Below, piece after piece: positions 27,435 to 59,927 of a stretch of DNA of 64,000 nt. The DNA is taken from NCBI GenBank assembly GCA_037447605.1, contig CM074808.1, forward strand, positions 806,001 to 870,000, in the 5' to 3' direction. The position numbers and the translations under genes were made by a program. Position 1 is the first letter of the stretch. Every line of letters begins with the position of its first letter. The stretch comes from Zygnema circumcarinatum SAG 698-1b (Eukaryota > Plantae > Zygnematophyceae). Under the pieces are notes generated by a model. The model made no database searches and had not been told where the DNA came from. It saw only the letters and a program-made list of their open reading frames with translations.

Positions 27435-29440
27435 TCATGTACGGTACCGTACCGTATCGTACCTTAAACTAAGGTGTCGCATCATATCGTATCTTAACGT
27501 ACGGTTTTGTACGGGGAATGAACGGCTTACATTGCAGGAATGGCAAGAAGTCGAGTGCAGACTCGGTCCACACGGGTTTCCTGCCCAACCGTGAAAAAAA
27601 AATGTTTTAAGCACCAATCAGGAGTCGCTATGCAGCTTGAAATTAGGTTGCAGAACTTTTTCCTTGGCCGGAGGACGGGCGGACATCTTGTCGTTTGCGG
27701 CCGCTGGACTTACCGCCGCGTCGCCGGCATATCGGTAGTGACCGGTGAATTATTAGCCCCTGTCGGCCAATTTCTGCGCCAACCCTCGTACCTTTTCACT
27801 CTCGACGGTGGCAAGTTTCGCCGGTTAAATACGATACGTCTACGATATGACGATATATCGAAGAAACGACAAGTCGCAGTCCGGTCCTTCCGGGCCAAAC
27901 ATATACCGTACAGGAAACGGGACCGCCAGTTGGCCGGCTGGCTGGCCACATGGCGACAGTTATTTGAACCTTCATTAGCCTGGGTTTGGAGGTTTAGCGT
28001 TTCCCGTCCGTCCACCGGACGGTCGGATCGAACGGTTCTCGACACTTTCCGTACAGCGATCTTCAGGACCGAGTTCGAGCTACCGTACGGCACTCACTGA
28101 ACCGTTCGAACAAGGTCATAAAATTCTGTATTATTTTTGTACCAGAGTTTTTTTGGTTGAATATTTTTTCTTTTTAAAATGTTTAGCATCCGCCACATAC
28201 ACTTTGTATGGCGGCCAGTCATTGGCTTTCCAGTCATTTCCTTTTTTTTTTTTTTTTTTTTTATAGAGCCATCCCCTGAACGCGCGCGCTCACGGAAATC
28301 GACGGTCCAGATGCGCCGCTCAGTGGACTCGCCAGGTGTCCTCTCTGTACGGCCGAGAATCCGTACAATAATGTCAGTGCGCGATGAACCAGGGAGCCGA
28401 CACGTGGTACAGTACCATTACTAGCGCCGCTACGCGACGGTAACGTACGGCACAGTATAGCCGTACACGTTGTTCTTTAGCGGTTTTGGCTCGGAGTGTC
28501 GAACGCGTTGCAAAGTGGAGACCTCGCACTAGAATATGCTCGTGTCAGCCGTACTTGGCGGTTTGATGACGTCACTGGCGAGGCCATTTTTGGTTTTTTT
28601 TCCAGTTTTCGGTTTGCTGGTCCGCGCCAACTCGAGGCGACTGTGCGAAATTAAATATTGTCCGTACAGTACAAGACATGGAGGACCGTCAAATGTTTTT
28701 TTGGCGGAAGCCATTGCCCGTATTAAACGTTTTTCCCTGCCCGCATTCATTCACTACCCTACAACTCGATCATGTCATTCTCTGTTTTTCTTTCCGTCAA
28801 CCGTCTGCTTCTCCAACAACCGCCTATCAAAAACATTTTGAAACTGTCCTCTCCTCATGCAAAACTTTTCCCTTCCTTTCCGAGCTGCCCGAAAAAACCC
28901 TAAAAACATCCCTGCCAGCGTTCGTACAAACCGAGTCGGCGCATTCCGCCGGCAACCGGCCGCCGACGACGGCACAAAAATTCAAAATTCCCAGACTCTG
29001 AAATCCGACGAACCCGCCCTCCAATTTCCCGTGACTTCCTCCGCCAATCCGGGCCCTCTCTCGCACGTGCCTCTCGCCCGTGCCGCCCGTCGCCTCACTC
29101 CCATTTATGAACCAACGACCGCCAATTCTGTCGCCACGTCCCGCCCCGTCAGCGTCGAAAAATCGAGACCGGCCCCAGCCGGCCAGTTTAATGCCGCTCC
29201 CCCGCCGGCCGGCAGCTTCCTGCCGGCCACATCTGCCGACAAGCCGCCGTACATTCCCGTAGCCCACCGTACCGTACCGCCCGCCTTGTCAGATCCCGTA
29301 ACTTCCAGAGGCGCCACAGGCGCTCCGGGCGGCCACGTTCCGGCTGTAGCGTTTTCTCTCCGCCTCCGGACGCGCGCGCCGTCGCGCTACAGCTGCCCGC
29401 CGCTCACCACGTATCTTTCATTCGTACAATAACCGTACAT
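27435..29440. promoter_or_regulatory. Dense cluster of CGTAC/GTACG (SBP-box-type) motifs upstream of the STIG1-like gene
   Basis: About 20 CGTAC/GTACG sites counted by eye in ~2 kb (about 4 expected at uniform base composition), mostly as CCGTAC. Function is inferred. Confidence 0.5.
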
Positions 29441-29973
29441 TCAGTTGTCGGTTAGCGAGGGCGCACCGGCGCGCGGACCGCACTTCATGCGGCGCCGGTC
29501 CCGGGCCCACTCACAAGCCGGGGACGGCGGCTGGTGGGGCCCACTGAGCAGATGTCGGTGCGCGTGTCGGTGGCGACTGCCGGCCTGCCTGCGATCTCCC
29601 ACTTTCGGTGCGTCGAAGTGCCTCCGCCTGACAGTGCCAAACGCGTCTCCGCCGTCCGATCCCAATCCGACGGCGAGGGCGCGCCCTCGCCCGGCGGTCC
29701 CAGCCAATGGGAGGCGGCCGTTGCCCCCCGGAGTGGGGCCGCCGAATGCGGGAGGCCTCGCAGCGCGGGCCACGGCCGCTACTTAGCGCAGGGCGCGGGG
29801 GAAGGCAGGGAGATCGGGACTGCAGGACGCCTGCAGCGGGCAGAGGAGGGAGAGGGAGAGGGAGGGGGAAGGGAAAGGGGAAGGGGAAGGGGAAGGGGAG
29901 GATATAGGAACTAAGGGGAGGAAGGGGAACAGGTGACCAGGAGAAGGTCAGGCCTTGAAGGCCTTCAGCAGCC

Positions 29974-31819
29974 ATGGCGCAAGTGCAGTCGCTTCTAGTG
30001 GCTGCAGTTGCTGTAGTATTAGTTAGTGTGCTTCCCTCGCTGCTTAACCCTGTAGAAGGCAAGTTCGGTCTCTCTGTTGCATCGCCAGATCTGTTCTCTA
30101 GAGGTTCCGACTCCTCCGCTGTTGGCGAATCCCTCCTTCAGCCGCACTCCCTCCTCGCTAAATTGGTCTCTAGCGACCCCTGCGCCAGCGGCTCCTCTGT
30201 GGACGCCAACGGGCACCCCTGCAGCGTGCAGGCCGTCTCCATCCCCAAGCTTGGCGGCACTGTGCGCGCCGACAACGTGGTGTACCGCGTGGTAGGAAAG
30301 CATCCCCCTGGAGTTGGCCATCATCGCAAGCGAGTCCCGGCCCCCAACTCCCCTCCCCCGCCTCAGGTCTTCGCTCCTCCCGCTCCAAAAAACCGAACTA
30401 TTGGCGGACACCATGCCCCCGGCGTTGGCCATCGCCCGCCCGGCTTTGGAAAGCATCCTCCTGTTGCGGTCACTCCTGGAAGTGGAAACAAGGGGGGCCA
30501 TCACCCTCCAGGAGTAGGGAAGCATCCTCCTGGAGAAGGGCACCACGCTCCCGGTGTGGGGAAGCGCTGCCACAAAGATCCAGCTCGCTGTTTCAAAGTG
30601 GCGTTCAATCCTACCCTTCTCTACGATCCGGGCGCGACCACTTGCTGCCAGTAAGTTCAATGAATTCTCACAGATCTGAGTCTATGTGCTTGAATAACGC
30701 TTGAAAGTCGCCTCTTGAGCTGTTTTTTCCTTCATTTGGTGGGATCCTGACGCTCTCTTTGTTGTTTGCAGTAAGCGGTGCGTGAACCTTGAGACGGAGA
30801 GGAAACATTGTGGTCAGTGCTTCCTCGAATGCCGCAAGGGAGTCCCTTGCAATTCCGGGAAGTGTAGCGATTCACCCCCGACTCCTCCCAGCGAGCCTCC
30901 TACTCCTATTCCGTCCCCTCCTGTGAAGTCTCCTCCTCCCAGCAAGACTCCTCCTACTCCCGTTCCCTCCCCTCCTGCCAAGTCTCCTCCCCCCAGCAAG
31001 ACTCCTCCTTCTCCCACTCCCTCCCCTCCTGCCAAGTCTCCTCCTCCCAGCAAGACTCCCCCCGCTCCCACTCCGTCTCCTCCTGTGAAGCCAAGCCCCC
31101 CTGGTGGAAGACACCCTCCCGGTGTTGGCAAGCGTTGTAACAAGGATCCAAGACGCTGCCTCAGCGTGTCGTACAACCCTCAACTTCTCTACGATCCCGG
31201 AGCTACCACCTGTTGCAGGTGGGTTTCCTCTCCCGCGTTCTGCCGCTTTTTTCCCTTCTGTTTTCCATCGTGCATTGTGCATTGTGCCAGTTATGTGGAG
31301 ATCTGACATGTTTTTTGTTCCCTTTTGCAGTAAGACTTGCGTGAACCTGCAGACCAATAGGAAGCACTGCGGGAGTTGTTTCAACAACTGCCGGAGCGGG
31401 ACGTGTACCGACGGAGTTTGTATACCCAAGTTCCGCCATCCTCCCGGTGTGGGCAAGCATCCTCCCGGAGTGGGCAAGCGGTGCCACGTGGATCCCAAGC
31501 GCTGTTTGAGTGTGGCATACAACCCCACTCTCCTCTACGATCCGGGAGCCACCACTTGCTGCCAGTGAGTCCCTCATTCCCTTTGGCCACTTACATTTGT
31601 GATTGCTGCTGATTGTCTTTGTGATTCAGTGATTGTTTGTTTGGTGTACTTGAGGGACTGACAGTGTTTCAATGATCATATCTGACCGTCTTTTGTTCAT
31701 TTTCTTGCAGCAAGCGATGCACCAACCTGCAGACGGACAGGAAGCACTGCGGGACTTGCTTCAATGAGTGCAGGAAAGGGGATCAATGCGTTGGTGGCCA
31801 GTGCCAAGTCTACCCTTAA
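29974..31819 (+). CDS. Secreted STIG1-domain x3 / extensin-like chimeric protein with His-Pro-Gly repeats; exons 29974-30650, 30772-31218, 31331-31564, 31711-31819
   Basis: It has an N-terminal signal peptide (MAQVQSLLVAAVAVVLVSVLPSLL). Three CxxDPxRC...GATTCCxKxCxNLxTxRKHCGxCFxxCRxGxxCxxGxC modules resemble STIG1. There is an SPPP-rich linker and ~10 HPPGVG-type units. All introns are GT-AG, phase 2. Confidence 0.85.
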
Positions 31820-33199
31820 CTGCGCTCCTTCCCTCCACCCAGCCGGACCGAATCCTCTCGTAAATAAGGGAAATAATCTGGCCAAGAGCCAGTCAGTCAT
31901 GCCATGCGCTCCATGCCATGATCTCACATGTCGATGATGATCATCACATCACCGCCGAGCCACCGTCGACCCCTCCCGCTTACATCTCAACCAATTGAGG
32001 ACGGATGGATGTATGGATGGACGGAGCTATCCATGGAGGACCGTCTTCTTCGCCGACTGCTGATTCTGCTGAATGGCGAGCAGCCTGCATGTCCCCTGCG
32101 AGAACAGCACCTCCAAATGGAGGTCATGTTGATGTGAATGATGTTCTCGCAGACTGCAGGACAAATAATGTCTCCGATGCACCACCATAAGGCTTTTTAG
32201 CCAGTAGATCCGACATTAATAAGTTTTTTTTTTGGATCTACGGTCATCAGTTGAGACGCTTTAAATCATGTTCAGAGCTCTCTGTCAGTTTGGCGGAAGG
32301 CAGGTCTCTTTCAAGTCCATACCTCTCGTCAGTGTTCTCCCGAATGAATGTAGCGATAGCTTTTTTGTGAAGTAGAGAGGCTCTGTAAGATTTCTGTTGA
32401 TAAAGAGATTTGTTCCAGTTTTTTTAGGGATCTCAAAATAACAAAAGTAGCAGCATCAGTTCGACGGACTGCTCTCTCCGTCTGCTGTAGCGCCTACGCA
32501 TTTGTGTTAAAATCGACATTTTTATGCCACCTATTCGCTGGTGGCTTCGCCATCCCATCAATCTCAGATGTTCCTGCTCGTAATCTGTCTTTTTTAATCT
32601 TATTTGCTGCATAATGTTGGTCTGTTCGTCCTGTAGCTCCTTGTTTCAAGTATTCAACTTGTATCCTTCCGTGCCATTCCTTCCTGCTTGTTGAATTTTG
32701 CTTTGCCGTTGGAGGAGCTTATATCACTTATCAGCCAGAACTAACTCACTCGCCTTCCATCTCCTGCAAATACGAACATTTCAAACGACGATGATAGCAT
32801 GATGGCTGCTTGCATTGGTCAAAAACTTAAGCATTGCTGACTTTATCAAGGTTTCCTCAGATTTGAAGTTCTGAAGTGCAGCGGACCATCCTCATGTCAT
32901 GACTTAACACCCTCCCTGAATGTCATGTACATCGCGATGAAATTAATCCCGAAATCAAGATCCAACGGACTCTTCAACTGAGGGTGCCCATGGAACGGTC
33001 TCCGCGCGGCGATAAGCCTCCGCTCCTCCCGTGGCCGCCTTCGGTCGGCGCTTTTCCGCCGGCCCGTCCCGGCCGTCGATTCGGCGGCTCAAGAACCCCA
33101 TTGGACGGCTGCGGACCGCCCGGCGCGTCGACGTCTGTCGTTTTCTGCGGTTGGCAGCGCTGGCGCACTCCCGCTACGCGCCAAACGGGCCAGCGGTCA

Positions 33200-37236: not shown

Positions 37237-39036
37237 ATGCGGGTGCGTATTCGGGATGCCGCCGGCAACACGCAGCGTGTGGAATTGCCAGAAATTTGCG
37301 ATTTGCGCAGACTGCGGGAGCGAGTCGCAGCTGTGATGCAGCTTCCAGGAGAGAGCGTGCGCTTGTCGCTGAACAGGAGGGAAGAGATAGCAGGGCCTCC
37401 CAGCGCCATGCTGTCATCACTGGGAATCTGTTCGGGGGATTTGCTCTACTTGCTAGGAAGCGACTCTCTAGCGGGCACTGCTATGCCTGCTGCATCTGCA
37501 ACTGCAAGCTCTCTGGAAGTTCAGAAATGCCTGAAGGGTGGCAGCGCCGTGCTGGCACGTGCTGAGCAGCCACGCAAACCATCTGCAGCAGAGTTGGCGC
37601 GAGTTCGCCGAGAGAAGTGTGCAGCTGCAGCTTCCGAGAGATTATTAGATTCAGCTGCAAGTGCATCGGGAGTGTCTGCACAAAATATGACTTCCACAGG
37701 AGAGGTTAGTTGTGCAGATAGTGAAAGTCATGGTGTGATAGGCGTGGTTTTGAATAAGGAACAAGTGAATCTTGGAGATGACAAACTCGAGAATGTCGAT
37801 GTGCCGGAAAAGGTCATCCGGGTTAAGAGAAGCGGCTCAGACATGGTCGATGATGAGGAAACTGCTGTTGAGGGAATGAACGGGAATGGGACGGAAGGGA
37901 TGCCCGACAGCTTGCTCCGGGTTCTGATGACGGAATTAGAGCCCTTGTCTGCCGCGAGTTCTTCAAATATTTTAATAGCTGTGGTACATGCCGCTATGTT
38001 GGAAACGGGCTTCGTTCTGAGAGCTTCAGAACAACTTTCTGCTTCCAAGCAAACATATGGATTGCCCGACGGTTGGACGGCAGCTAAGGGACCTTTGACT
38101 CTGTCGTACGGCTTACCTGTTGCAGAAGCTGTCAGCTGTACCCTGCGTTTCCACACTCTTGGAGACTTCCTTCTTGTGTATGGCACTGTGAATGGCAGTT
38201 CAGCTTTAGTTAACGGCGATGTTAATAGGTTGACGTTGGGCGTTGAAGGATACTGGAATAGTTCGGCAACCCCGAGCAGCGTTCAGAAAATTTGTTTTGG
38301 GCTTTCCAAGAATATGCGCAAGCTGTGGGTGGAGGTTAAGGACAATCTATCACTGCTGCTGTTGACGAGCTTGTGCGAGCTGGCAGGTTTGCAGTCTCCT
38401 GTGAACCTTCTTTCACTTCCGACTGAAGTGAAACTGCATGTGTTGCAGAAGCTGCCACCAGTCGCACTGGCAGCTTTTGCGTGCGTTTGTTCAGAACTTC
38501 GGTTTCGTTCATCTGAGGATGACCTATGGAGAGCTCACTATCTGAACGAATTTGGAAGTCTGCCAAGTGATCTTCCAGCCAATTCCAGCTGGCGGGCTTT
38601 CTTTATATCCAAATGGCAGCATAAGCAGCAGCTAGAAAGAGAGCGCCTAGAAAGAGAGCGCCATGAAGTACGGAGCCGTGCTTTTATCCCTCCTCCTTTT
38701 GCTCCTGGCCCCTTTCCATTTCATCCAACTCCCGGGATTATTGGAGGCGAATATGACCGCTTTCCTGCAATTGGTGACATAGGCGGGGGATTTGGAGGCC
38801 CAATTTTAGGCCCCAGGGGACTTCTTCCTGGAGCAGGTTTTGGACGGCCTGGTGGCAGCTGGAGTCAGGAAGGCGATCTCCTCAGTGAGCCCCCAGGACT
38901 GAGAGGTCCTCCTCTTGGAGCCATGGGAGAGGTTGGTGACCTCCCTGGAATGCTTGCACCAGGACAACCCCGGAGGCTAGAAGGCAGGTTTGGTGGCCTT
39001 CCACAAAGGTTTGGTCGACCAGGAAGGTTCATTTAG
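37237..39036 (+). CDS. FBXO7/SKIP22-like F-box protein (N-terminal UBL, PI31/FP-like domain, F-box, Pro/Gly-rich tail), single exon, 599 aa
   Basis: UBL-like start MRVRIRDAAG...LSLNRREEI...LSSLGICSGDLLYL; IAVVHAAMLETGF (FP domain); F-box LLSLPTEVKLHVLQKLP; PGIIGGEYDR motif as in FBXO7. Confidence 0.88.
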   Translation: MRVRIRDAAGNTQRVELPEICDLRRLRERVAAVMQLPGESVRLSLNRREEIAGPPSAMLSSLGICSGDLLYLLGSDSLAGTAMPAASATASSLEVQKCLKGGSAVLARAEQPRKPSAAELARVRREKCAAAASERLLDSAASASGVSAQNMTSTGEVSCADSESHGVIGVVLNKEQVNLGDDKLENVDVPEKVIRVKRSGSDMVDDEETAVEGMNGNGTEGMPDSLLRVLMTELEPLSAASSSNILIAVVHAAMLETGFVLRASEQLSASKQTYGLPDGWTAAKGPLTLSYGLPVAEAVSCTLRFHTLGDFLLVYGTVNGSSALVNGDVNRLTLGVEGYWNSSATPSSVQKICFGLSKNMRKLWVEVKDNLSLLLLTSLCELAGLQSPVNLLSLPTEVKLHVLQKLPPVALAAFACVCSELRFRSSEDDLWRAHYLNEFGSLPSDLPANSSWRAFFISKWQHKQQLERERLERERHEVRSRAFIPPPFAPGPFPFHPTPGIIGGEYDRFPAIGDIGGGFGGPILGPRGLLPGAGFGRPGGSWSQEGDLLSEPPGLRGPPLGAMGEVGDLPGMLAPGQPRRLEGRFGGLPQRFGRPGRFI

Positions 39037-46186: not shown

Positions 46187-49100
46187 TTAAAGTTTGGCAG
46201 ACCGCGGTGCACTGGCAACCACAAGATGCCGATGGCGATAGAGCCACTGCCCTACGACTGTGGCCATGTAGGCACCAGGAATATCAGCTTCTCTGGTGAG
46301 ACCTATAAGGGAAACTCCTAATTCTAGGGAAACTGCAGGGGTCTTCTTCACACAGACCAGCCAAGCGGGGGCTGCAGCACCGGGCTGCGAACTCACGCTG
46401 TAGAGTGATGCAGAGGGAAAGTGCAGGGCCAGCTGCAAGCGAGCAGTGTATATCGAATCAGCAAGATTATGTGAGAGGCTGAGGTAGAAGTAACACGATG
46501 TAACAGAAGCTTGAGGCTCTTCTTTGTCAGCCTTTGCACAAGAGTGCAGATTGCAAAGAGGCAGGCGGAAAGCAGCTTTGACTCTTTTCCTGCCAATATA
46601 ATCATAAACTGTGTGCATAGCATGCATGAACCGACTCTGTTAGGAGCTTAAGAACCTTCATGAACCTATGAAGGACCCCTTATGAGCTTAGCTTAAAAAA
46701 GTTTCTCCTTACCAGATTCAGCACTTCGTTTTCCTGGCCTTGTGATACGCATGCCACCACCGCCTTCAGCTGCTGTTCAGATCCGACCTGCAGCGGCCAT
46801 GATTATCCTTCACTACAAGTCAGCCCTGCACCCTCGGACTGCCCCATTTGCTTCTTGTCCATAAGGGACAACTCGCTGCTCTCAAAACAATGGCTGACGC
46901 AGCCTCTAACCTTAGGGGGGGCACCCACTCTTTTCTTTGATTCTGGTATCATCAATGCTAATGACGGCCCTTTTGATCGGTTTAAACTCGGTCGCATACA
47001 CGTCGGAATCTCACATGATACTGAAATGGGCAATGGACATCTAGAAGAGGAGTTCAGAAGTGGGTAGTAGCACAATTGATGTAGCCGTCCCATGGAATAG
47101 CTCAGCTCACCTGCATTGTAAGATGCTCAACTGCCATTCGGACAGCTGTTTCCACTCCCACTCCCTCTACAGAAGCAGCAGCTGAAAACATTCCACCCTT
47201 GGCTTGCATCAAGAGAACTGCCCCAGATGCTGCCACTGATATCTCCTCCGGTCTCCGCAGCGACCATTCAGGAGCAAGTCCATGAAGGGTGCATGTTGGG
47301 AGCTCCTCAAGAAGCATGCGAATGCTTTCCTCAAGATTGTTAGCTGTTCGACCTTCACCTCCTTCTGCTTCTGAATCCTGAAGCTCCATGTCGTCACTTC
47401 CTCTCCAGGCAGAGCTTCCAACAGCCACCAATGCTAGGGTTGAGGGGCCCATTACCAGGCCAGCAGCAGCAAGTTTGGCAGCTTCAGATAAAGCCACCGG
47501 CAAAGAGGATCTGACGGCAAAACCATGGGCTCCTGCCACCTCTCCTGTCGCATCAGGCTCCCTCGCAAAACTTGCAAAATTCATCACCTCTTCCATGCCT
47601 ACAGCCGATGGGAAAGCACCGTCGTCCTCCCTAGGAGCAAACGGTTGCAATCCAGGAACCCTCTCCTGAAGTGGAATTGACTGGAAGTGCTCCTGCCCCC
47701 ACCCTCTCTTCATGTTTGTTGATTCTTGACCCCTCCGTGTCTGCCCCTTTTGGACTACAGAGATGCTCGAGGCTTTCCCGTTTTTGTCACCTACAGATTT
47801 CTTGATGGAAGTCTGTCCTGCAACTACTTTCTGACTTTCTTTTCGGCTATGCTTCATCTTGACAAGGGTTCCACCCACCGCAAGAGAAATCACACCGGCC
47901 ATCAGCAGAAGGCCTCTAAAAGTGGACAAACTCATTCCTGGAGAAAGTAGTGCCCTGACGCCTTGGCTGGTTTGGAAGACCTCCGGAGCCATCGACTCCT
48001 TTCTAGGAGGAATGGTCACTACCTGTCCTACTTTGATCGGCTGATTCTCTGAAAGGCTGTTTACCTCAATCAGGTCCCCTACATCAACCCCAAACTCCTC
48101 TGCAATTTCATACAAATAATCACCCGAACGAATGGTGTACTCCCTGAATCCTCCTTGCTCCAGGGTGGCTGCTGCAGGTACAGCTTCCCTTGAGTTTTTC
48201 CGAGCTGCCAGTTCCCCAAGATTTTCGCATTTTTGTCTGAGTTGCTTTTCCTCGCGAAGAGATGGCCCTTCTCGATTCCTAAGCAGCGGAAGCATCAGTG
48301 CCTGTCCTGCTTTCACCTTGCCCAGGTCCACCTCCGGATTCAAGGCCTGAAGCTCACTTCTCGTTACACCCCAATCCTTCGCAATGGAAGAAATTCGATC
48401 TCCTCTCTTCAGCACATATGTTGTTGCATTGGATGCATCACCCCCAGTCCTTTCATTAACAGACGTTGGCTTCGCCCGAACGATTCCCCCCAACTCCGTT
48501 CCTCCTTTCTTGGCAACATCACAGACATCGACAGCTGGAAATTCTTTGGGAGGCACTGAACAAGTATCGACTGCTGCGCTTACCGAACGCTTTTCCGATA
48601 GTGCCGATGGGGAAGAGGGCATTGAGCATTGCTCTGCACTAGTATTGTTTTCCGCACTGACTGGAGGTGAACTTGTAGGGCATTGCAGCAGCTGACAGCT
48701 GTCAAGAGCTGGCTCTACAAGCCCCCTTGGAACGACTATTTTCTGCTTTGGCTTCACTCTGTCAAGATCGACTCCCGGATTCAGTCTACGCAAAACTTTC
48801 AATTGCACACCCAGCTTATTTGCAATGGCAGCAACCCACTCTTTGCGCTTGATTTCATACAACTCCGTCTCTTCTCTCGTAGCCACAATTTCCTCACTAG
48901 TCTCTGGAGCAGGTTCAGATGATAACTTCTCAATTGCTGCATTGCCTTCTCTATCACTGCTGACAGCAGATCTTCCCTTCATCCACCCCACAAAAGCCTT
49001 CGCTGCCCGGCTTCCAGAAGCAAAAGGGCTCTCTGCAGTTTCGTCAGTCGCTTGCTTGGCGTCTGCATCCGTAGATGCAATGCGGTAAGAATCGTCTTCT

Positions 49101-49743
49101 GAGGCTGCCAGCTGGCAGGCTGATGGGTTCGGTAAAGCGTCTCCTTCTCCTCTGGCCAACCATTGTTGTGTTCGGGAGCCAGCCTGTTAGAAATAGTCAG
49201 TGCATCTGAAGCCGATGAGCAGCTTCCGCCATTCCGACATCCTTTACTATGGAACGGCTGGTCAAGTTTTAAAACTTGTGGTCAAGACATGCAAGGAAGA
49301 CGTGACTGAAGCCCGTCCAAAACCAAAAACAAAAAAAAAATGTGTATGCCAAATGCAAGCGGTTTCCAAAAGTAACAAAATATCTTGTTTCTTGATCTTC
49401 AGGAAGCGACTATACCGGACAGTTTCAGAGAATACCACACACGGCATAACATTTCAAGCGACGCATGCACAAAAAATTACAACATATGTTACGAACGGAT
49501 CCAGTACCTTGTCACGACAGCAGCTGGAGAGGGAGTCGCACGGCAACGAGAGGCCCCCCTCCTTGAAGCCCTACTCGAACAGGCCGCGCCTTTGTGACTG
49601 CCACGTGTTTCCCTGCCGGCGCGATGCCGCGACAGCAGCATAGCAACGCAAGCAGGAGCAGTTGCCTCGTGCGCTTCTTGAGAGAAGCCAGCTGTTGCAG
49701 GGTAAAGGGAAAGGTTCTGCAGAGGAGACGCCACGGCAGCCAT
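46187..49743 (-). CDS. Putative plastid-targeted 3xLysM + transmembrane protein with an uncharacterised (possibly FIST_N-like) C-terminus
   Basis: Exon 49743-49508 encodes a Ser/Ala/Arg-rich transit-like peptide. The long exon (~49151-47111) carries three LysM repeats (YEIKRKEWVAAIANKLGV..LNP, YVLKRGDRISSIAKDWGV..LNP, YTIRSGDYLYEIAEEFGV..VN) and a TM (GLLLMAGVISLAVGGTLV). A further exon lies at ~46787-46713. The 3' end (to 46187) is uncertain. Confidence 0.72.
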
Positions 49744-50928
49744 GGCTGCTGCAGGGAGCCCTCCTCCCTCACCACCACTCACCTCTCCTCTCCTCTCCTA
49801 TCCCACTCCCGCCCACAAAGATAGCAAAAGCGCCTGTCAAACCAAAGCTGATCCCCGTGCAAGGCTGACCAATTCCACGTAAGAATGAATTTTGAAATTG
49901 GAAAATACTTGGCTGTGTAACTGGCAATGAAACTGTAACTAGTCGTAGAACGACGCAGTGTTCAGTCACATAGATCCCAATGATTTGGACTTTAGAGGGT
50001 ACTGTACTTTGTCGAATATGCACCAATCACGGCCTGCCATGTCAACAAAATGTCCACGTGGCAAATCCGGATTGGCTCTCGTTCTCATTTTTTCACTTTG
50101 AACGGAGACGAAGACCCTCCCACCTTCAAACTTGGAGGTCTGGAAGGGGGCAACCCTAAAAGTTGGAGAGGCTTCATTGCAGGAGCAGGGACAGGGAGCG
50201 GGAGGCGGTGGTCGGTAAGAGCCTGCAGAAGCGCCCTTTCCTATCACGTTAAATCTTATGTTTCTTTCAAGATGGAGACTGTCTTTGCTGGCTTGAAGTG
50301 TATGCTCTGTCGTGTGAATTGACTCGGTGTGCTTCTGAGGTTTATTGAAAACCGTGGGGGTTGTCATTATATGCTGGCCTTGGGTGTTCTGATGATAGAG
50401 ACGTTGTTGCGGTGGTTTTTCTGCCTTCGTTAGCATCGGCGTTGTTTTTAGGAGGATGCAATTTGCATGCGGTTATGGTTCAAGTCGTGCTTGTCGCCTT
50501 TTTACCGTTTCTTTCCTCAAATGGATTACTGTTAGTGATCTTGTCGTTTTTTGGAAAAGCTGAACTTTGGAGTTGAAGAATACTAGACCGTAGAAAGTAG
50601 CTTTTTAAGAGGACGACAGATGTCTCTCACTGTTACCCTGGCGAGTGTCTACTGTTTTTTCACTTCTTTTCTGCCTGTATTCGCTTTTGCCCCTGCATAC
50701 TGGAAATGAATAAATCCAGTTGGGACTCATTTGTTGTATGAAATAATTTTGTAAGACAGTATGATGTGGTCTCTTCATAGGGTCCCTTTCGTCTCTGAGG
50801 CGTGAATTAAGCAATTACATGAGCTCTAATCTGATGGCTTTTGTTCATATAGCACTTGGCACGTTGTTCAAACATTTTATATCTGTGGAACCTTTCACTG
50901 TCCATGTTTTTATGCAGGTTTGACGTAT

Positions 50929-53900
50929 ATGGCATTTAGATATGGTAAAGGAGATGTCCGTACTGCTGTATTTGAAAGACCCCGTCCAGTTGATTTGGAT
51001 CGCGGGCGAGCAGAGGAAGTAAGTCGCTTGGATCGCCCCCGGGAACTTAGTGAGCGTGATCGACGAGATCGAGAGGTCGAGCGGTTTGATCGAAGGAGAG
51101 GGCCTCGCTCTCGCACGCGCTCTCGCTCACCTCGCCGCTTTGAGCGTCGCAGAAGTCCTGAACGAGATAGAGATCATGACAGGGATCGGTTCCGTGAGCG
51201 AGAGCTTGAACGCGATCGAGAAAGGCGGTCTCCTGGAAGAGAACGGGAACGCCGCGAGAGGTTAGAACGGGAGCGTCCCTTGGACCGTGGGCGAGAGCGG
51301 GAGGTTGAGCATGTGCGAGAGAGGAGTTCTCCATCGAGGGAGAGGATAGATCGCATGAGAGATACTGAAAGGCTACCAATAGCTGTTCCTTATGGAGGTT
51401 TCAATGGCCCTCCTGGGCCCAGCTTCAATGGGCTGAGTCGTGGAAGCGGCTTTGGCCCATCTCCAGGGTTTACCGCAGGAGGACCTGCGATGCCCGGGTT
51501 CAATGATGTCTGCTTTGTTTGCGGAGGGGTTGGCCATTTTGGACGTGACTGCCCAAGCAATCCCGAGGATTTATCAAAGCTGCGACTTCCTGGAAGGCGA
51601 GGCTCTGATGTTGACATGGGGGATCCCAACGGACGAAACAAGGGACTTCCACCAGACGATCCCAACTTTCCAAAATGTTTCGAATGCGGCAAGAGGGGGC
51701 ACGTTGCTCGGGAGGTAGGGCTTCTTGGGTGGTTGGAAACTTCGGCCAAGTGGTGCAGAACAGGCTGATAGATTCTGGTTGCATTGTGGAGATTTCAGTT
51801 ATATATGGATATGATTGCATTGAAGGTAGGATATTTTTTCTTTAGGCGTGGAGAATGGACAGGCGCCGATTTGTGGAGAGCTGTGCATGAGGCTGGCTGG
51901 TATGGAATTTGGAGACCGTGGGGGGGCATCGATTCGTTCGCAATTGGCTCATCAGGGGCAGGTTCTCTGGGACACTAGTGGAGGTAGGCCAGAAAGGGGA
52001 GAGAGGCAGTGTGGGACTTGAAAGGCGGGACCTACATGGAGTCTTTGATGGAGTTACTGAATCAGCGTCTAACAGTTCTGCGAATGGGGGGTTCCTTACC
52101 ATGGTAAGGCTGGCGCATTAGTTTGTGGTTGCAATGGCAGAGAATAGGCATGAGTGGGGCTTTGTTAAAGGTTGGCGGGCAGAGGAGAAAAGGTTCATGT
52201 GGAGGAAGGACGGACAGGAGGTATGTCTTAGTGGCGGGATAAGGTTCTGAAGCGCTCATATAGGGGATGCAATCCGAACAAGTTGGGCACTTCCGACCCC
52301 TGCTGCACTGCTGACCTTACCGGCATGGGTTTGACGAACTGCTGGCGAGGGATGAGGACCTCCTGGAGATTTCTTATCGCTGGAGAGGAGGCTTGGCAGT
52401 GCAAAGGAGTGCAGTATTGGTTAGGGTGACTGAGGGGTGGGGATTGGGGGCATCATTTGAGCTGGAGTTTAGTGTCCTGGCGAGGTCTTAGGCAAGATGG
52501 TGGAAAGGGGAGACAGCTTGGGGATGGAGTAAGTTTGATGTTGGGGTTTCAGCGCTGTTGGTTCTTCTCCGGCATGAGGTCTATGTAGTCTTAGAGCCAA
52601 ACTGAAGGTGGGCTTCTTCTCCAGCTGAAATCAGTTATCACTGAAAGGCCTATGGAGGTTTGGCAGTTTCAAGCATGGTCGACGGAGCTAGACATGGCCC
52701 TAGTCTTAACCACGCTGTAAGCGTTTGGGACCTTGTTCGGTGCTTCATGAATCTTGCATGAGTCTCAAAGACCAAATTGTGCTAATAGAGATTGTTATTG
52801 GCTCTTTGGTTGTGTCTTATTGTGATCTGTTGAGGTTTCAGTGCCGCCTCAAGCAAGCCGGCGCTGGTCCTATTGAACAACGCTGTTACAACTGTGGCTC
52901 CATTGGTCACATCGCAAGAGACTGCCCGAATCGAAATGCAGCAGATGGACCACTGCCTCCTCATCATGTCGACATGCCTCCTCCAAGTGGACCACCTCGT
53001 GCTGCACCTGGTGGCGTGATTAGTGGCGAAGCGTGCTATAACTGCGGTAGGCCGGGCCATTTCGCTAGAGAGTGTCCCGCTAAGTTTGGGCCACCAGCAA
53101 TGGGTCCTTCTCCTATTATGGACCGTTGGTTGGGTGGAATGCCAAGACCTGGCCCTATGGGCCGGGGTATGGGCTTTGGAGGAATGGGGTTCAGTACCCT
53201 TGGTTTTGGAGGCGTTGGTCCTGGAGGCATGAGCGCAGGTGCAGCTGAGGGCTGCTATGAGTGCGGCCATATGGGGCATTTTGCTCGCGAAGTAAGCAAT
53301 CGCTGCTGTTATTAACATGTAGAGAAAACAGGAGGAAAGAATGTCCAGACAAGGAGCTTTCATTCATCATTCAATGTATGCTGTTCACCTGAAGAGACTG
53401 TTGACGGAAGTTGCATGTCCTGGTTGTGGGTCATGATGGGCGGATGCTTGGAAACAGTGCCCGGTGAGATCACGCAGACTCGCAGAAAGGGCTGCTGCAG
53501 CAGCACACGCAGGAGGGGGAGCAGGTGGTAGTGGGGGAGAGGGCCGCCGAATTGCGTCCTCGGCGATTCGGCACAGTGCGGGTGGTGGACGTGCTGAGGA
53601 AGCCAAGCTGAACAACGAGCTGGAAGACTATATGAAGGTGCGGCTTGCTATCTGTTGTAGCACACTTTTTGCCAGTTTTGGGGGCACAGGAAGTGTTGCA
53701 GGGAGCCTCTGGCAACACGACTCTGGTGGCAAAGGGCAGCTTCTTTGGTGTATGGCTGTGTCTGGGATTGACTAACGGATGCGTAAGGAGAAAAGGACGG
53801 GATTATCCTACTTGTCTTTAAAATTCTGTTGCATTGCAATATTTTCTGCATAGTTTGGCTCTAGTACAAAGTTCCTTGAGGTCTTTGACAGGCATGTTAT

Positions 53901-56009: not shown

Positions 56010-59000
56010 ATGCAGCCTCTGTTCAGACGACGGGAGGGCGGACGGCAGGATGGAGCTCCGCAGTTTGGCAGAGAGGAGGGAGAAGGGCCGTCATTGAATA
56101 TGGAAGGTCTGAAAACAAATAGAGAGCAGTTTTTCCGCACAACGCATCCAAGCCCGGGGCCAAGTGCTGCGTTTCAAGAGCGGGATGTTGCTCCTAACAG
56201 ACCTTTTTTTCAAGGTATGCATAAGGCAGGCAGCGATTTTTGGGAGCAGGGTACCTACTCGCAAGCACCAGGATCATCAAGTCAGCCTCCTGCCTTTGGA
56301 GGAATACTTTCGTCACGATCTTTACCGTCTCCCGACATGCTAAGAGGTAGGGACTCTGCAGGGCTTAGGTTAGGGAATAGAGAAAACTACCGTGTTCAAG
56401 TAGATTCGTTCCGCTTGGAACAAGTCCAAGGCACACAGGAAGGTGCGAGCTTGCGTGAGAACCCGGCAACGAGTGGTAGAGGAACTACCACGTGGCGGGA
56501 AGAGAGTGGCAGTAGTAGACAGTTTGACAAACATCGTCATGAGTTTAGTGAAGGGCGTGGGAGCGGGGGTAGTGCGAGAGGAAGCGGTTTCAGAGGAGGT
56601 CGGGGGTTCGGGCGAGGCGGGAGGGGTGCTGAGCAGCATCGAGAAGAGAAAAGATTAGAGGGCTTTGGAGAGGAGGGTAGTTCTAGCAGGACAGGGAGGG
56701 GGAGTGAGTTTGGGGGACGGGGCTTTGGACGTATGGGATCCATGAGGGGGGGTCGAGCCGGAGGAGAGAGGGCTCTAATGATTCCGAATACAGCTGGCGT
56801 GCGATTTGGGAGAGGTATAGACAGCAGAGAGGTTAGAGAAGACGGCATATTGGGACCCGGAGCGAGGATGTCAAAAAAGAGCGGGAGTAGCTATAGAGCA
56901 AGTACGGCTAGTGACAAGGATGGAGCTGCCGAAAGGATAGGGACAGGGGACCCCATGGTGCCTGAGCGTGTTCAGGAGATAAAGGAGAAGCTTGCAACGG
57001 GTCAGGTAGAGTGCATGATTTGCACTGACATTGTGGGTAGGGCAGCTCCTTGCTGGTCTTGTGGAAGCTGTTTCACCATCTTCCACCTGCACTGCATCCG
57101 CAAGTGGGCTATGACTCCATCTGCAGCAGTTTCAAGTGGCCCTCAAACCGACGGAGCAGCTCCGAGCTGGGGGTGCCCTGTATGCCGGAGTGCTCAGCTC
57201 GTCCAAGCCAACGATATTCATTATCGGTGTTATTGTGGGCGGGTGGGTGATCCCGATTACAACGAGTATTTTACCCCACACTCATGTGGAGAAATTTGTG
57301 GAAAGCCGCTGGACCGTACAGGTGAAGGGCTGTGCCCTCATCACTGCACTCTGAGGTGCCATCCGGGCCCTTGTTCTCACTGCACAGCCTCGGCTTTGCC
57401 TCAGAGCTGCCACTGTGGTAAGAAGCAATTTGTCCGCAGATGTGCGGAACGACTGAAGGTCGGGCTCAGCTGTGACCAGCCATGTGGAAGGTTACTTGGT
57501 TGTGGCCTCCACACTTGTACTCAAACATGTCATTCTGGACCCTGCGTTGACTGTAGGGTTTTGGTTCCCACACGTTGTTATTGTGGCAAGAAGTCGGAAG
57601 TCATGATGTGCGGACAGATAGGGCAAAGTATGGTGGCCGATGACATTGTACAAGGAGCATTTTCTTGTGGGGTTATCTGCGGAAAGGACCTGACATGTGG
57701 CAATCACAAATGTCAGAAGGTCTGCCATGATGGACCATGTAGCGAGTGTCAGCTGCTGCCAGAAAACGTCTCAACTTGTCCCTGTGGGAAAGTGTCACTA
57801 TCGGTGCTTCTGCCGCCGGAAAAGGAGAGGAGAAGCTGCTTAGACCCAGTTGCCACCTGCAGTCAAATATGCAAAAAGGAACTGCCTTGTGGCCTGCATG
57901 AGTGCAAAATGCCCTGCCATAGAGGCCCCTGCAGGCCGTGTACGGTGATGGTAGAGCAGCGGTGTCGTTGTGGGGACTTTTCTCGCAATGCCCCTTGCTC
58001 TCATGTTTTTGGAGCTAATGGTACGGATGCTCGTCCTTCAGCAGCAACAGTAGAGAAGGGCCTGTTTCTTTGCGAAAAGAAGTGTGGGAAGAAGAAGAGT
58101 TGTGGCCGGCATCGTTGCAACAATCGCTGCTGTTCTGTTGGGAGAGACGGTGCGAATGAGATGTTGGAAGTCGACCCACACCTCTGCCTACTGCCCTGCG
58201 GGAAGAAGTTGCAGTGTGGGCAACATAGCTGCCAAGAGCTCTGCCATGCTGGACACTGCCCCCCTTGTTTGAACTCTGTCTTTAGTGAACTCTCTTGTGC
58301 GTGCGGTGCAACTACTGTAGCTCCTCCTCTACCATGCGGCACTCCTCCTCCCTCCTGCCTGAGAGACTGCTCTGTTCGGCAACCTTGTGGCCATCCATCC
58401 ACCCATCTTTGCCACTTTGGGCCATGTCCTCCCTGCACTGTGCCTATTGCTAAATCCTGCACGGGGGGACATGTCGTGCTGAGAGGAGTTCCATGTGGGT
58501 CACGTGATATAAAATGCAACAACCGTTGTGGGGTTTTACGGAAGTGTGGCCAACACTTCTGCAACAAGCTGTGCCACCTTCCTCCCTGCGATTCACCACG
58601 TCCGGAAGGTGCAGAGGAGAGATCAGCTGGCGATAATTCTTCTTCCTGTGGGCAGCCGTGCGGAGCACAGCGGAGAGACTGCCTACACAACTGTACGGCT
58701 CTCTGCCACCCCGGGTCGCCTTGCCCAGACTTGAGATGTCAGGTCCAAGTCATGATAATGTGTCCCTGCAATAGAATTTCAGCCAAAGTGCCATGCGATG
58801 TGGGAGGTGGCAAGGAGGCCGATTCATGGATGGTGTTGGCAAGTCTCCCTACTCCTTTACAGCCTGTAGAGGAGCGAATTCGAGTGCCTCTTGGACAGAG
58901 GCAGCTTTCATGTGACGAAGAGTGTGTGAAGATGGAGAAGAAGAGAGTACTTGCAGAGGCTTTTCAGCCATTGGGAGCCACTTTTGATGGTTTGGATGTT

Positions 59001-59927
59001 GCCTCAGGGAGCAGTTCTGCTGATCTCAGTGAGCTCGCTCGAAGGGAGCCCTTGTGGGTCGCCGGAGTTGAGGCTCGGTTGGGGGCCCTTATAGTGGGGT
59101 CTCCCAAGGGAATGCTTGGAAATGCAAAGTTTAGAGTGCATGTGTTTTCACCCATGCCAAGTAGCAAACGAGCAGCCATTCATGCTCTTGCGTGTCTTTG
59201 GAGCATGCGCTCAACTTCTGTCGGAAATGAGCCGCGACGAATGGTGGTTGTGTATACCACAACCAAGTCACGACCCCCTCCCAGAACAATCAGCAAATGC
59301 TTAGTAGCTTTACCGGGACATTCTGCCCCTCCTCCTCCTTCGTTTAATGGTGAGCTTGATTTGGACCCTTCCACTGTAGTTGCTTTGTTAGACCTGCCAA
59401 TGGAGGCAAAGGTTTCCAATCAACTTCTGCGCTTTGGGGGCGAGTGTGAACTCGTCTGGTTGGATGATAAGAACGCTCTTGTAATCTTCGATAGTCCTGG
59501 AAGAGCTGCCACAGCTCTGCGTTACCTCGACCATGGGTCGACCTATAGAGGTGCGACCACGTGGGAGGGTCGACCTACAGTGAGAGGGAGAGGTGGGAGA
59601 AGGAGTGCGGAAGCTGGTAATGAGGCTGAGAATGCTTGGGCCGATGATCAGGGCAAAGGGAATGCCATTTCTGATGCTATCCCTAGCGGAGCATGGAGAC
59701 GGGGGGGTCCGCCGATTTCTTCCACAGGAAACACCTTTTTGGCTTTAGAGCTGGCAACAGAGGAGGGAACATCTGAGGTAAAATCTGTGGAGGAGGCACG
59801 GAGGACAGGAGGAGGGGAGAATCACACGCAAGCTGTAAACAAGGAGAGGAAGCAAGAGGAAGTAACATCTCAGCACGCCGTAGCTCCCGTTGAAGATACG
59901 GAAGAATGGGAACAGTTGGCCGAGTAG
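56010..59927 (+). CDS. NFXL1: NF-X1-type zinc finger protein (RING/PHD-like, ~11 NF-X1 fingers, R3H, C-terminal RRM-like), single exon
   Basis: CMICTDIVGRAAPCWSCGSCFTIFHLHCIRKWA...WGCPVCR; YRCYCGR..PHSCGEICGK; repeated CGxHxCxxxCHxGPC; R3H-like SPMPSSKRAAIHALA..S.GNEPRR; LVWLDDKNALVIF. The true start may be hidden by the upstream gap. Confidence 0.93.
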   Translation: MQPLFRRREGGRQDGAPQFGREEGEGPSLNMEGLKTNREQFFRTTHPSPGPSAAFQERDVAPNRPFFQGMHKAGSDFWEQGTYSQAPGSSSQPPAFGGILSSRSLPSPDMLRGRDSAGLRLGNRENYRVQVDSFRLEQVQGTQEGASLRENPATSGRGTTTWREESGSSRQFDKHRHEFSEGRGSGGSARGSGFRGGRGFGRGGRGAEQHREEKRLEGFGEEGSSSRTGRGSEFGGRGFGRMGSMRGGRAGGERALMIPNTAGVRFGRGIDSREVREDGILGPGARMSKKSGSSYRASTASDKDGAAERIGTGDPMVPERVQEIKEKLATGQVECMICTDIVGRAAPCWSCGSCFTIFHLHCIRKWAMTPSAAVSSGPQTDGAAPSWGCPVCRSAQLVQANDIHYRCYCGRVGDPDYNEYFTPHSCGEICGKPLDRTGEGLCPHHCTLRCHPGPCSHCTASALPQSCHCGKKQFVRRCAERLKVGLSCDQPCGRLLGCGLHTCTQTCHSGPCVDCRVLVPTRCYCGKKSEVMMCGQIGQSMVADDIVQGAFSCGVICGKDLTCGNHKCQKVCHDGPCSECQLLPENVSTCPCGKVSLSVLLPPEKERRSCLDPVATCSQICKKELPCGLHECKMPCHRGPCRPCTVMVEQRCRCGDFSRNAPCSHVFGANGTDARPSAATVEKGLFLCEKKCGKKKSCGRHRCNNRCCSVGRDGANEMLEVDPHLCLLPCGKKLQCGQHSCQELCHAGHCPPCLNSVFSELSCACGATTVAPPLPCGTPPPSCLRDCSVRQPCGHPSTHLCHFGPCPPCTVPIAKSCTGGHVVLRGVPCGSRDIKCNNRCGVLRKCGQHFCNKLCHLPPCDSPRPEGAEERSAGDNSSSCGQPCGAQRRDCLHNCTALCHPGSPCPDLRCQVQVMIMCPCNRISAKVPCDVGGGKEADSWMVLASLPTPLQPVEERIRVPLGQRQLSCDEECVKMEKKRVLAEAFQPLGATFDGLDVASGSSSADLSELARREPLWVAGVEARLGALIVGSPKGMLGNAKFRVHVFSPMPSSKRAAIHALACLWSMRSTSVGNEPRRMVVVYTTTKSRPPPRTISKCLVALPGHSAPPPPSFNGELDLDPSTVVALLDLPMEAKVSNQLLRFGGECELVWLDDKNALVIFDSPGRAATALRYLDHGSTYRGATTWEGRPTVRGRGGRRSAEAGNEAENAWADDQGKGNAISDAIPSGAWRRGGPPISSTGNTFLALELATEEGTSEVKSVEEARRTGGGENHTQAVNKERKQEEVTSQHAVAPVEDTEEWEQLAE

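Follow-up and report, generated by a model that had tools for sequence, protein, structure and literature searches.

The plastid peptidoglycan layer was described as 'a mysterious cloak' in a 2023 review (PMC10784329). Its molecular role is still open and its protein partners are few: the synthesis enzymes, DipM, and PPASP, whose connection is purely correlative. DipM is a plastid/cyanobacterial peptidoglycan hydrolase that joins LysM domains to a LytM/M23 domain, where the LysM domains target the protein to the wall (PMC4015805). PPASP is a short, membrane-anchored protein whose transmembrane (TM) helix is N-terminal and whose only LysM is C-terminal; it lacks a transit peptide. Embryophytes have it but prasinophytes do not, and its role in plastid peptidoglycan has been proposed from co-occurrence alone (PMC4815162). 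Here, we analyze a gene from the streptophyte alga Zygnema circumcarinatum SAG 698-1b, located within a stretch of 64,000 nucleotides (assembly GCA_037447605.1, contig CM074808.1, positions 806,001 to 870,000; the whole stretch is called the window, and positions are counted from its first letter). The gene lies on the minus strand (49743..46187) and encodes three LysM repeats, a single TM helix and a conserved C-terminal domain of about 275 residues, called the tail. The protein belongs to a small green-lineage family that is without a name.

A green-lineage family of membrane-anchored LysM proteins

The family was collected through an orthologue, P0001 (870 residues). Throughout, whole-domain searches and fold predictions used exon pieces from the window or natural orthologues as queries. 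A full HMMER scan with P0001 residues 585-870 against 1.84 billion representative proteins (E up to 1e-3) returned four proteins, which are P0001 itself and the following three members.

Chara braunii, GBG85842.1: 1396 residues; tail E-value of 2.5e-13; four Pfam LysM stretches
Spirogloea muscicola, SM000048S16509: 643 residues; tail E-value of 6.5e-7; two Pfam LysM stretches, with the sequence beginning inside a further LysM
Pyramimonas obovata, A0A7S0R096: 763/765 residues; tail E-value of 5.7e-5; one Pfam LysM stretch

The window protein, P0001 and these three members share one layout, in which one or more LysM domains are followed by one TM helix and the C-terminal tail. The architecture that a sequence-only reading of the window had claimed is therefore real and kept in five green-lineage sequences. 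The Chara, Spirogloea and Pyramimonas members are named only 'hypothetical protein' or 'LysM domain-containing protein', their accessions have no mention in the searchable literature, and the window's own LysM protein is not in the protein libraries searched. Moreover, the named member taxa fall within groups for which a peptidoglycan toolkit is reported: streptophyte algae have reportedly retained it (PMC13519894), and the pathway is complete in some prasinophyte classes (PMC4815162).

Word-index searches, which reach only part of the length range, returned little else. In particular, exon 2 of the gene retrieved P0001 and bacterial multi-LysM proteins only, P0001 residues 585-870 retrieved P0001 alone, and the tail profile retrieved only P0016, a 146-residue EukProt fragment filed under Prorocentrum minimum. 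The first ~49 residues of P0016 nearly match the Pyramimonas protein P0012 and the remainder is a proline-rich repeat; for these two features it was not counted as an independent family member, and it is likely a cross-contamination or a frame-shifted transcript in its data set. The best-conserved tail motif found no relative in 185,579 bacterial and archaeal (GTDB) genomes. A metagenome locus (L006) was rejected as a chance motif match (G.YLATVVGQW) on a high-GC, bacterial-looking contig.

Gene model and sequence constraint

The gene has four exons that sum to about 873 codons, and all of the peptides quoted by the sequence-only reading are found on the minus strand.

49516..49743 (-), exon 1: open frame from the ATG at 49743-49741; a 76-residue N-terminal extension; 3' junction uncertain
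47111..49183 (-), exon 2: 691 codons (open reading frame (ORF) 47102..49159); CAG acceptor directly after an in-frame TAA; donor CAG/GTGAGC; contains the pre-LysM linker, three LysM, the TM helix, the basic linker and the first 169 tail residues
46713..46787 (-), exon 3, VGSEQQLKAVVACVSQGQENEVLNL: 25 codons; CAG acceptor and GTAAGG donor; central strand and helix of tail repeat 2
46187..46432 (-), exon 4: 81 codons (46432-46190) and a stop (46189-46187); end of tail repeat 2 and a short third unit

CAG serves as the acceptor throughout, with GTGAGC as the donor of exon 2 and GTAAGG as that of exon 3. The donor of exon 1 (GTGACA) is weak, making the exon 1/2 junction the least certain of the gene model. 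An alternative exon 1 donor (AAG/GTACTG) reaches a stop when joined to the acceptor at 49184/49183 and would need a poor acceptor at 49151 instead; the originally proposed junction was retained because this alternative fails with the 49184/49183 acceptor.

Comparison with P0001 supports the remainder of the gene. Its coding sequence is uninterrupted on 2.9-3.0 kb contigs from three RNA-seq runs (SRR8128905-7), indicating that P0001 is an expressed mRNA, and in the word-index search it is 48% identical to exon 2 over 98% of the query. A tblastn search of P0001 against the window places residues 58-764 at 49213-47108, residues 763-787 at 46790-46716 and residues 788-868 at 46435-46193; the three blocks are colinear, without gaps, and their boundaries coincide with the proposed splice sites. 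Exons 3 and 4 are, respectively, 72% and 70% identical to P0001 residues 763-787 and 788-868. Because the blocks are colinear, gap-free and join at the splice sites, orthology confirms the 3' exons that had earlier been called only tentatively: the mRNA-derived protein is colinear across exons 2 to 4, up to the stop at 46187, and exon 4 runs 64 residues beyond 'SLYSVSS' to reach that stop.

Constraint differs strongly along the protein. The LysM domains are 53-78% identical between the window protein and P0001, the TM helix 72% and the tail 62-70%, as compared to 21-35% for the linkers and exon 1; exon 1 itself is not conserved (21% identity to the P0001 N-terminus). The tail is therefore a constrained domain and not a spacer, since its identity is like that of the LysM domains and far above that of the linkers.

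A separate observation concerns the linker between LysM 1 and LysM 2 (48422-48727), where the block PP.E.PAVDV.DVAKKGGT.LGG..RA.P is common to the window protein and P0001 within an otherwise poorly conserved region; the block has no family match.

N-terminus, LysM repeats and membrane helix

The elements of the protein upstream of the tail, together with the first part of the tail, are as follows.

48728..48862 (-), LysM 1: Pfam PF01476; 69% identical to P0001 LysM1
48287..48421 (-), LysM 2: Pfam PF01476; 53% identical to P0001 LysM2
48008..48142 (-), LysM 3: the best Pfam LysM stretch (ORF residues 341-384); 78% identical to P0001
47861..47914 (-), TM helix, GLLLMAGVISLAVGGTLV: single; the top hydropathy peak in every orthologue; 72% identical to P0001
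47828..47860 (-), basic patch KMKHSRKESQK: C-terminal of the TM helix; net charge of +4 over 15 residues
47111..47617 (-), tail, first part: alpha/beta repeat 1 and the greater part of repeat 2; 62% identical to P0001 594-763

Pfam PF01476 finds the three LysM repeats of the sequence-only reading as three stretches (E of 2.9e-27; 94.8 bits vs a gathering cut-off of 20.9), and it also scores above its gathering cut-off in P0001, P0009, P0010 and P0011. Two further features that had been read from the one sequence are shared by the family. The 15 residues after the TM helix carry a net charge of +3 to +5 in all five members, as compared to -1 to +2 for the 15 residues before it; because the basic C-terminal flank is conserved in 5/5 sequences, the earlier positive-inside inference is not an accident of one sequence. 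Further, the N-terminus was described as transit-peptide-like, and in composition both exon 1 and the N-termini of four orthologues do resemble organelle presequences. In particular, exon 1 has an S+T content of 0.18, A of 0.23, R+K of 0.13 and D+E of 0.04, with a net charge of +7 and no strong hydrophobic core, and the N-terminal extensions of the family, from 75 to ~220 residues long, are positively charged and S/T/A/R-rich with few acidic residues (net charges of +5 to +13 over 77 residues in the four orthologues).

These features bear on an alternative that we consider unlikely, where the protein would be a receptor-like LysM protein of the plasma membrane or endomembranes that senses external chitin or bacterial peptidoglycan, and the tail would be a cytosolic signalling module that replaces the kinase. 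Three LysM domains, a TM helix and an intracellular domain do form the layout of plant LysM receptors, and the basic flank would suit a cytosolic tail. Moreover, PF23577 and PF23473, two models of plant LysM sub-families, score above their cut-offs, and the solved structures nearest to LysM 3 are the chitin-binding fungal Ecp6 (the closest) and bacterial cell-wall-binding LysM proteins. However, no signal-peptide core was found in any orthologue N-terminus (maximum 12-residue Kyte-Doolittle score of 1.0-1.7), so that a stretch of 100-470 residues would need to traverse the membrane with no such signal, and these N-termini instead have the composition of organelle presequences. In addition, the CxC disulphide motifs that lie between the LysM domains of plant receptors are absent from exon 2, and the LysM domains are set apart by long disordered linkers instead of packing together. 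Pfam scans of the exons and of P0001 contained no protein kinase family, and those of the exons, P0001 or further family members contained no M23/LytM domain.

The tail domain and its predicted fold

The first part of the tail is alignable with the Chara, Spirogloea and Pyramimonas members. Within exon 3, LK[AS]VV is conserved in 5/5 sequences, and the best-conserved motif of the family, G[VI]SL.G.T.EA..[GP]GA..A.V.G.WLY, lies in exon 4. Hydrophobic and structural residues account for most, indeed almost all, of the positions kept across the family, and the tail is therefore likelier to be a binding module, for a protein or a small ligand, than an enzyme.

The sequence-only reading had called the tail FIST-like. 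FIST consists of three YjgF-like repeats with pseudo-three-fold symmetry, and is most similar to chorismatases and cyanuric acid hydrolases (10.1101/2024.06.03.594717). The predicted elements of the tail are helix-strand-helix-strand in unit 1, hairpin-helix-strand-helix-strand in unit 2 (a complete unit) and strand-strand-helix-strand in a short unit 3; unit 1 is without a clear hairpin in Spirogloea, and unit 3 has only ~60 residues and one helix. An hhalign comparison puts the helix and strand of unit 1 in register with unit 2 (P of 0.009).

Two AlphaFold models were computed, one for P0001 585-870 (alignment A2; mean predicted local distance difference test score (pLDDT) of 56.0, with 70-93 over the last 130 residues) and one for Spirogloea 380-643 (alignment A4; mean pLDDT of 56.4); the other four models of each run have a pLDDT of 39-46. 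In Foldseek searches of 350,542 PDB chains, the FIST domain of FBXO22 occupies ranks 1 and 2 for both models, with E-values of 1.1e-3 and 1.7e-3 and a probability of 0.87-0.92 for P0001, and E-values of 0.03-0.04 and a probability of 0.41-0.47 for Spirogloea; TM-scores are ~0.26-0.28 for both. The matches that follow are AroH chorismate mutases, a chorismatase, Toblerone-fold cyclic amide hydrolases, IspF and the FtsZ C-terminal domain. Chorismatase, Toblerone-fold hydrolases and YjgF-like chorismate mutases belong to the published FIST fold set, and IspF and FtsZ are outside it (10.1101/2024.06.03.594717). The viral library of Foldseek gave nothing useful for the tail.

The earlier FIST call thus has weak support from the fold, as two low-confidence models both have the FIST domain of FBXO22 as their top match, but none from sequence profiles, as the Pfam FIST families (PF08495 FIST_N and PF10442 FIST_C) do not match any of six tail sequences at E up to 10. 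From these models, a FIST-like fold for the tail is plausible, at about an even chance. A lineage-specific alpha/beta domain without relation to FIST, with fold matches that are noise from weak models, is in our estimate only slightly below an even chance. Consistent with an unrelated domain, the six tail sequences have no match to any Pfam family at E up to 10, the full proteins have none to Pfam FIST at E up to 1, and neither NCBIfam nor the PDB has a sequence match to the tail, using single sequences or the profile. Both models are also weak (mean pLDDT of ~56), with Foldseek E-values of at least 1e-3 and TM-scores of 0.2-0.28, and the third unit is short. However, noise would then have to bring one and the same PDB entry family to the top of 350,542 chains twice, in models that start from different first sequences, and the remaining fold matches are mostly of the class reported for FIST.

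Proposed placement and role

From the combined features of the family, we infer plastid targeting, the membrane and orientation of the protein, its ligand and what its tail does. Tentatively, and with somewhat less than an even chance, we place the protein in the plastid envelope, where the LysM domains would bind plastid peptidoglycan in the intermembrane space and a FIST-like tail would be stromal. According to this proposal, the N-terminal extension would act as an organelle-targeting peptide and the protein would be a single-pass protein of an envelope membrane. The three bacterial-type LysM domains, on their long disordered linkers, would extend on the non-basic (trans) side into the intermembrane space and grip the glycan strands of the plastid peptidoglycan. 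The tail, which appears to have 2.5-3 YjgF/chorismate-mutase-like alpha/beta units of the kind that builds FIST, would lie on the basic (cis) side, taken as the stroma, and would bind a protein or a small ligand there. In this way, the protein could connect the wall with a partner in the stroma, for which the division or wall-precursor machinery is the most plausible candidate; bacterial bitopic division proteins such as FtsN follow a similar logic. The complete reading, in which an unrecognised green-lineage family performs such coupling, with LysM domains that hold plastid peptidoglycan in the intermembrane space and a diverged FIST-type sensor that connects to the division or wall-precursor machinery of the stroma, is doubtful.

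The conserved positive-inside flank, the targeting-like N-termini and the member taxa are compatible with a plastid location, with LysM domains that face the intermembrane space and with peptidoglycan binding. Moreover, the missing CxC motifs and the precedents of DipM and PPASP count in favour of the proposal.

Several observations weigh against the proposal, in addition to the weak models and missing FIST profile matches of the tail. No orthologue was found among annotated land-plant proteomes in the libraries searched, by word index or by HMMER, where a relative as close as that of Chara would have been detected; the protein is therefore not a universal part of the plastid peptidoglycan system. 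Mosses and liverworts retain plastid peptidoglycan, and the narrow distribution of the family, with its apparent absence from the standard moss and liverwort models, weakens the case. LysM domains also bind chitin, and the closest solved LysM is that of the chitin-binding Ecp6. Exon 1 is the least certain element, as it is defined by an open frame and its composition, without orthology support. Finally, a cleavable transit peptide followed by a central stop-transfer TM helix normally leaves the N-terminal part of a protein in the stroma, as in ARC6.

This last point leads to an alternative placement at the plastid inner envelope with the opposite orientation, where, after stop-transfer insertion, the LysM domains would be stromal and the tail would face the intermembrane space. 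It would be the usual outcome for a transit peptide with one central TM helix, and stromal LysM domains could meet precursors that contain N-acetylglucosamine. However, the basic flank is C-terminal of the TM helix in 5/5 orthologues and the stroma is without polymerised peptidoglycan, and we regard this orientation as quite improbable.

A placement at the plastid outer envelope appears very unlikely as well. Here, the N-terminal part would pass through the translocon at the outer envelope (TOC) into the intermembrane space, the TM helix would be released into the outer membrane and the tail would be cytosolic, creating a link from the wall to the cytosol. To our knowledge, there is no outer-envelope protein with such an import route and layout, which counts against it. 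At the same time, the LysM domains would stay beside the wall, and the basic flank would be cytosolic, as is usual for outer-envelope anchors. The FIST domain of FBXO22, taken as the sole solved fold match of the tail, is also a cytosolic module that recognises other proteins (10.1101/2024.06.03.594717).

If the envelope placement with a stromal tail is true, a conserved membrane protein whose two faces bear wall-binding repeats and a sensor-like domain, respectively, would offer a concrete way into wall function and plastid division. Likewise, if the tail is a FIST domain, the FIST fold would extend to plants in a new context.

Neighbouring genes in the window

The window holds spliced nuclear genes, among them ORFs of the NF-X1/NFXL1-type zinc-finger, F-box and zinc-knuckle kinds, and no Rfam families were found within its 64 kb. 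Four regions outside the LysM gene have features of their own.

37237-39036 (+): a single ORF of 599 residues with an N-terminal ubiquitin-like region (UN_NPL4, E of 4.4e-5), a PI31 N-terminal/FP domain (E of 1.9e-7) and an F-box (E of 1.9e-8)
56010-59927 (+): an uninterrupted ORF of 1305 residues with NF-X1 zinc fingers, R3H and an NFXL1 RRM-like domain; an NFXL1-type gene, apparently intronless
50920-53315 (+): two ORFs with CCHC zinc knuckles, the first of which also has long Arg/Asp/Glu/Ser-rich repeats; head-to-head with the LysM gene
28000-32000: GC content of 0.57-0.58, the highest in the window (0.43-0.54 elsewhere), with long overlapping ORFs on both strands

The domain order of the ORF at 37237-39036 is that of animal FBXO7, which is unexpected in a plant-type genome. 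The two ORFs at 50920-53315 are probably one spliced gene for an RS-like RNA-binding protein. The ORFs within 28000-32000 have no Pfam match except for a sub-threshold one to STIG1.

Comparison with known systems

Like the window protein, plant LysM receptor kinases and LYP proteins (CERK1/LYK and CEBiP/LYP) combine three LysM domains and a single TM helix with a domain on the basic side of the membrane, and plant LysM sub-family models match the window protein above their cut-offs. Unlike them, the window protein is without a signal peptide, CxC motifs, a kinase or a glycosylphosphatidylinositol signal, its LysM domains are separated by long linkers, and its tail is a different domain. DipM is likewise nuclear-encoded, with several bacterial-type LysM domains, in lineages that keep plastid peptidoglycan (PMC4015805). 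In contrast to DipM, the window protein has no detectable M23/LytM domain; it has a TM helix and another C-terminal domain, and no bacterial homologue over its tail. PPASP shares with it the nature of a membrane-anchored LysM protein, but in the window family the order is reversed (three LysM, TM helix, tail of ~275 residues) and there is a prasinophyte member. The window protein is therefore not a LysM receptor kinase, DipM or PPASP, because a defining feature of each was tested for and is absent.

The FIST domains of FBXO22 and of bacterial FIST sensors would be alike to the tail in being alpha/beta domains of repeated YjgF-like units, with an element order that fits in the predicted models. 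In contrast to these, the tail has no profile match and a short third unit, and its fusion partners are a TM helix and LysM domains, in place of an F-box or bacterial output domains. Overall, the combination of LysM repeats, a TM helix, a FIST-like tail and an organelle-type N-terminus is not described in the literature searched.

FtsN and other bitopic division proteins with SPOR domains cross the membrane once, binding the wall on one side of it and a partner on the other. By analogy, the window protein may have the same wall-to-interior layout, although its domains are unrelated, its chain order is opposite and its role in division is only proposed here. If the coupling reading is true, the family would be a chloroplast counterpart of the bacterial links between the wall and the cytoplasm in division, kept in some algae and lost in most land plants.

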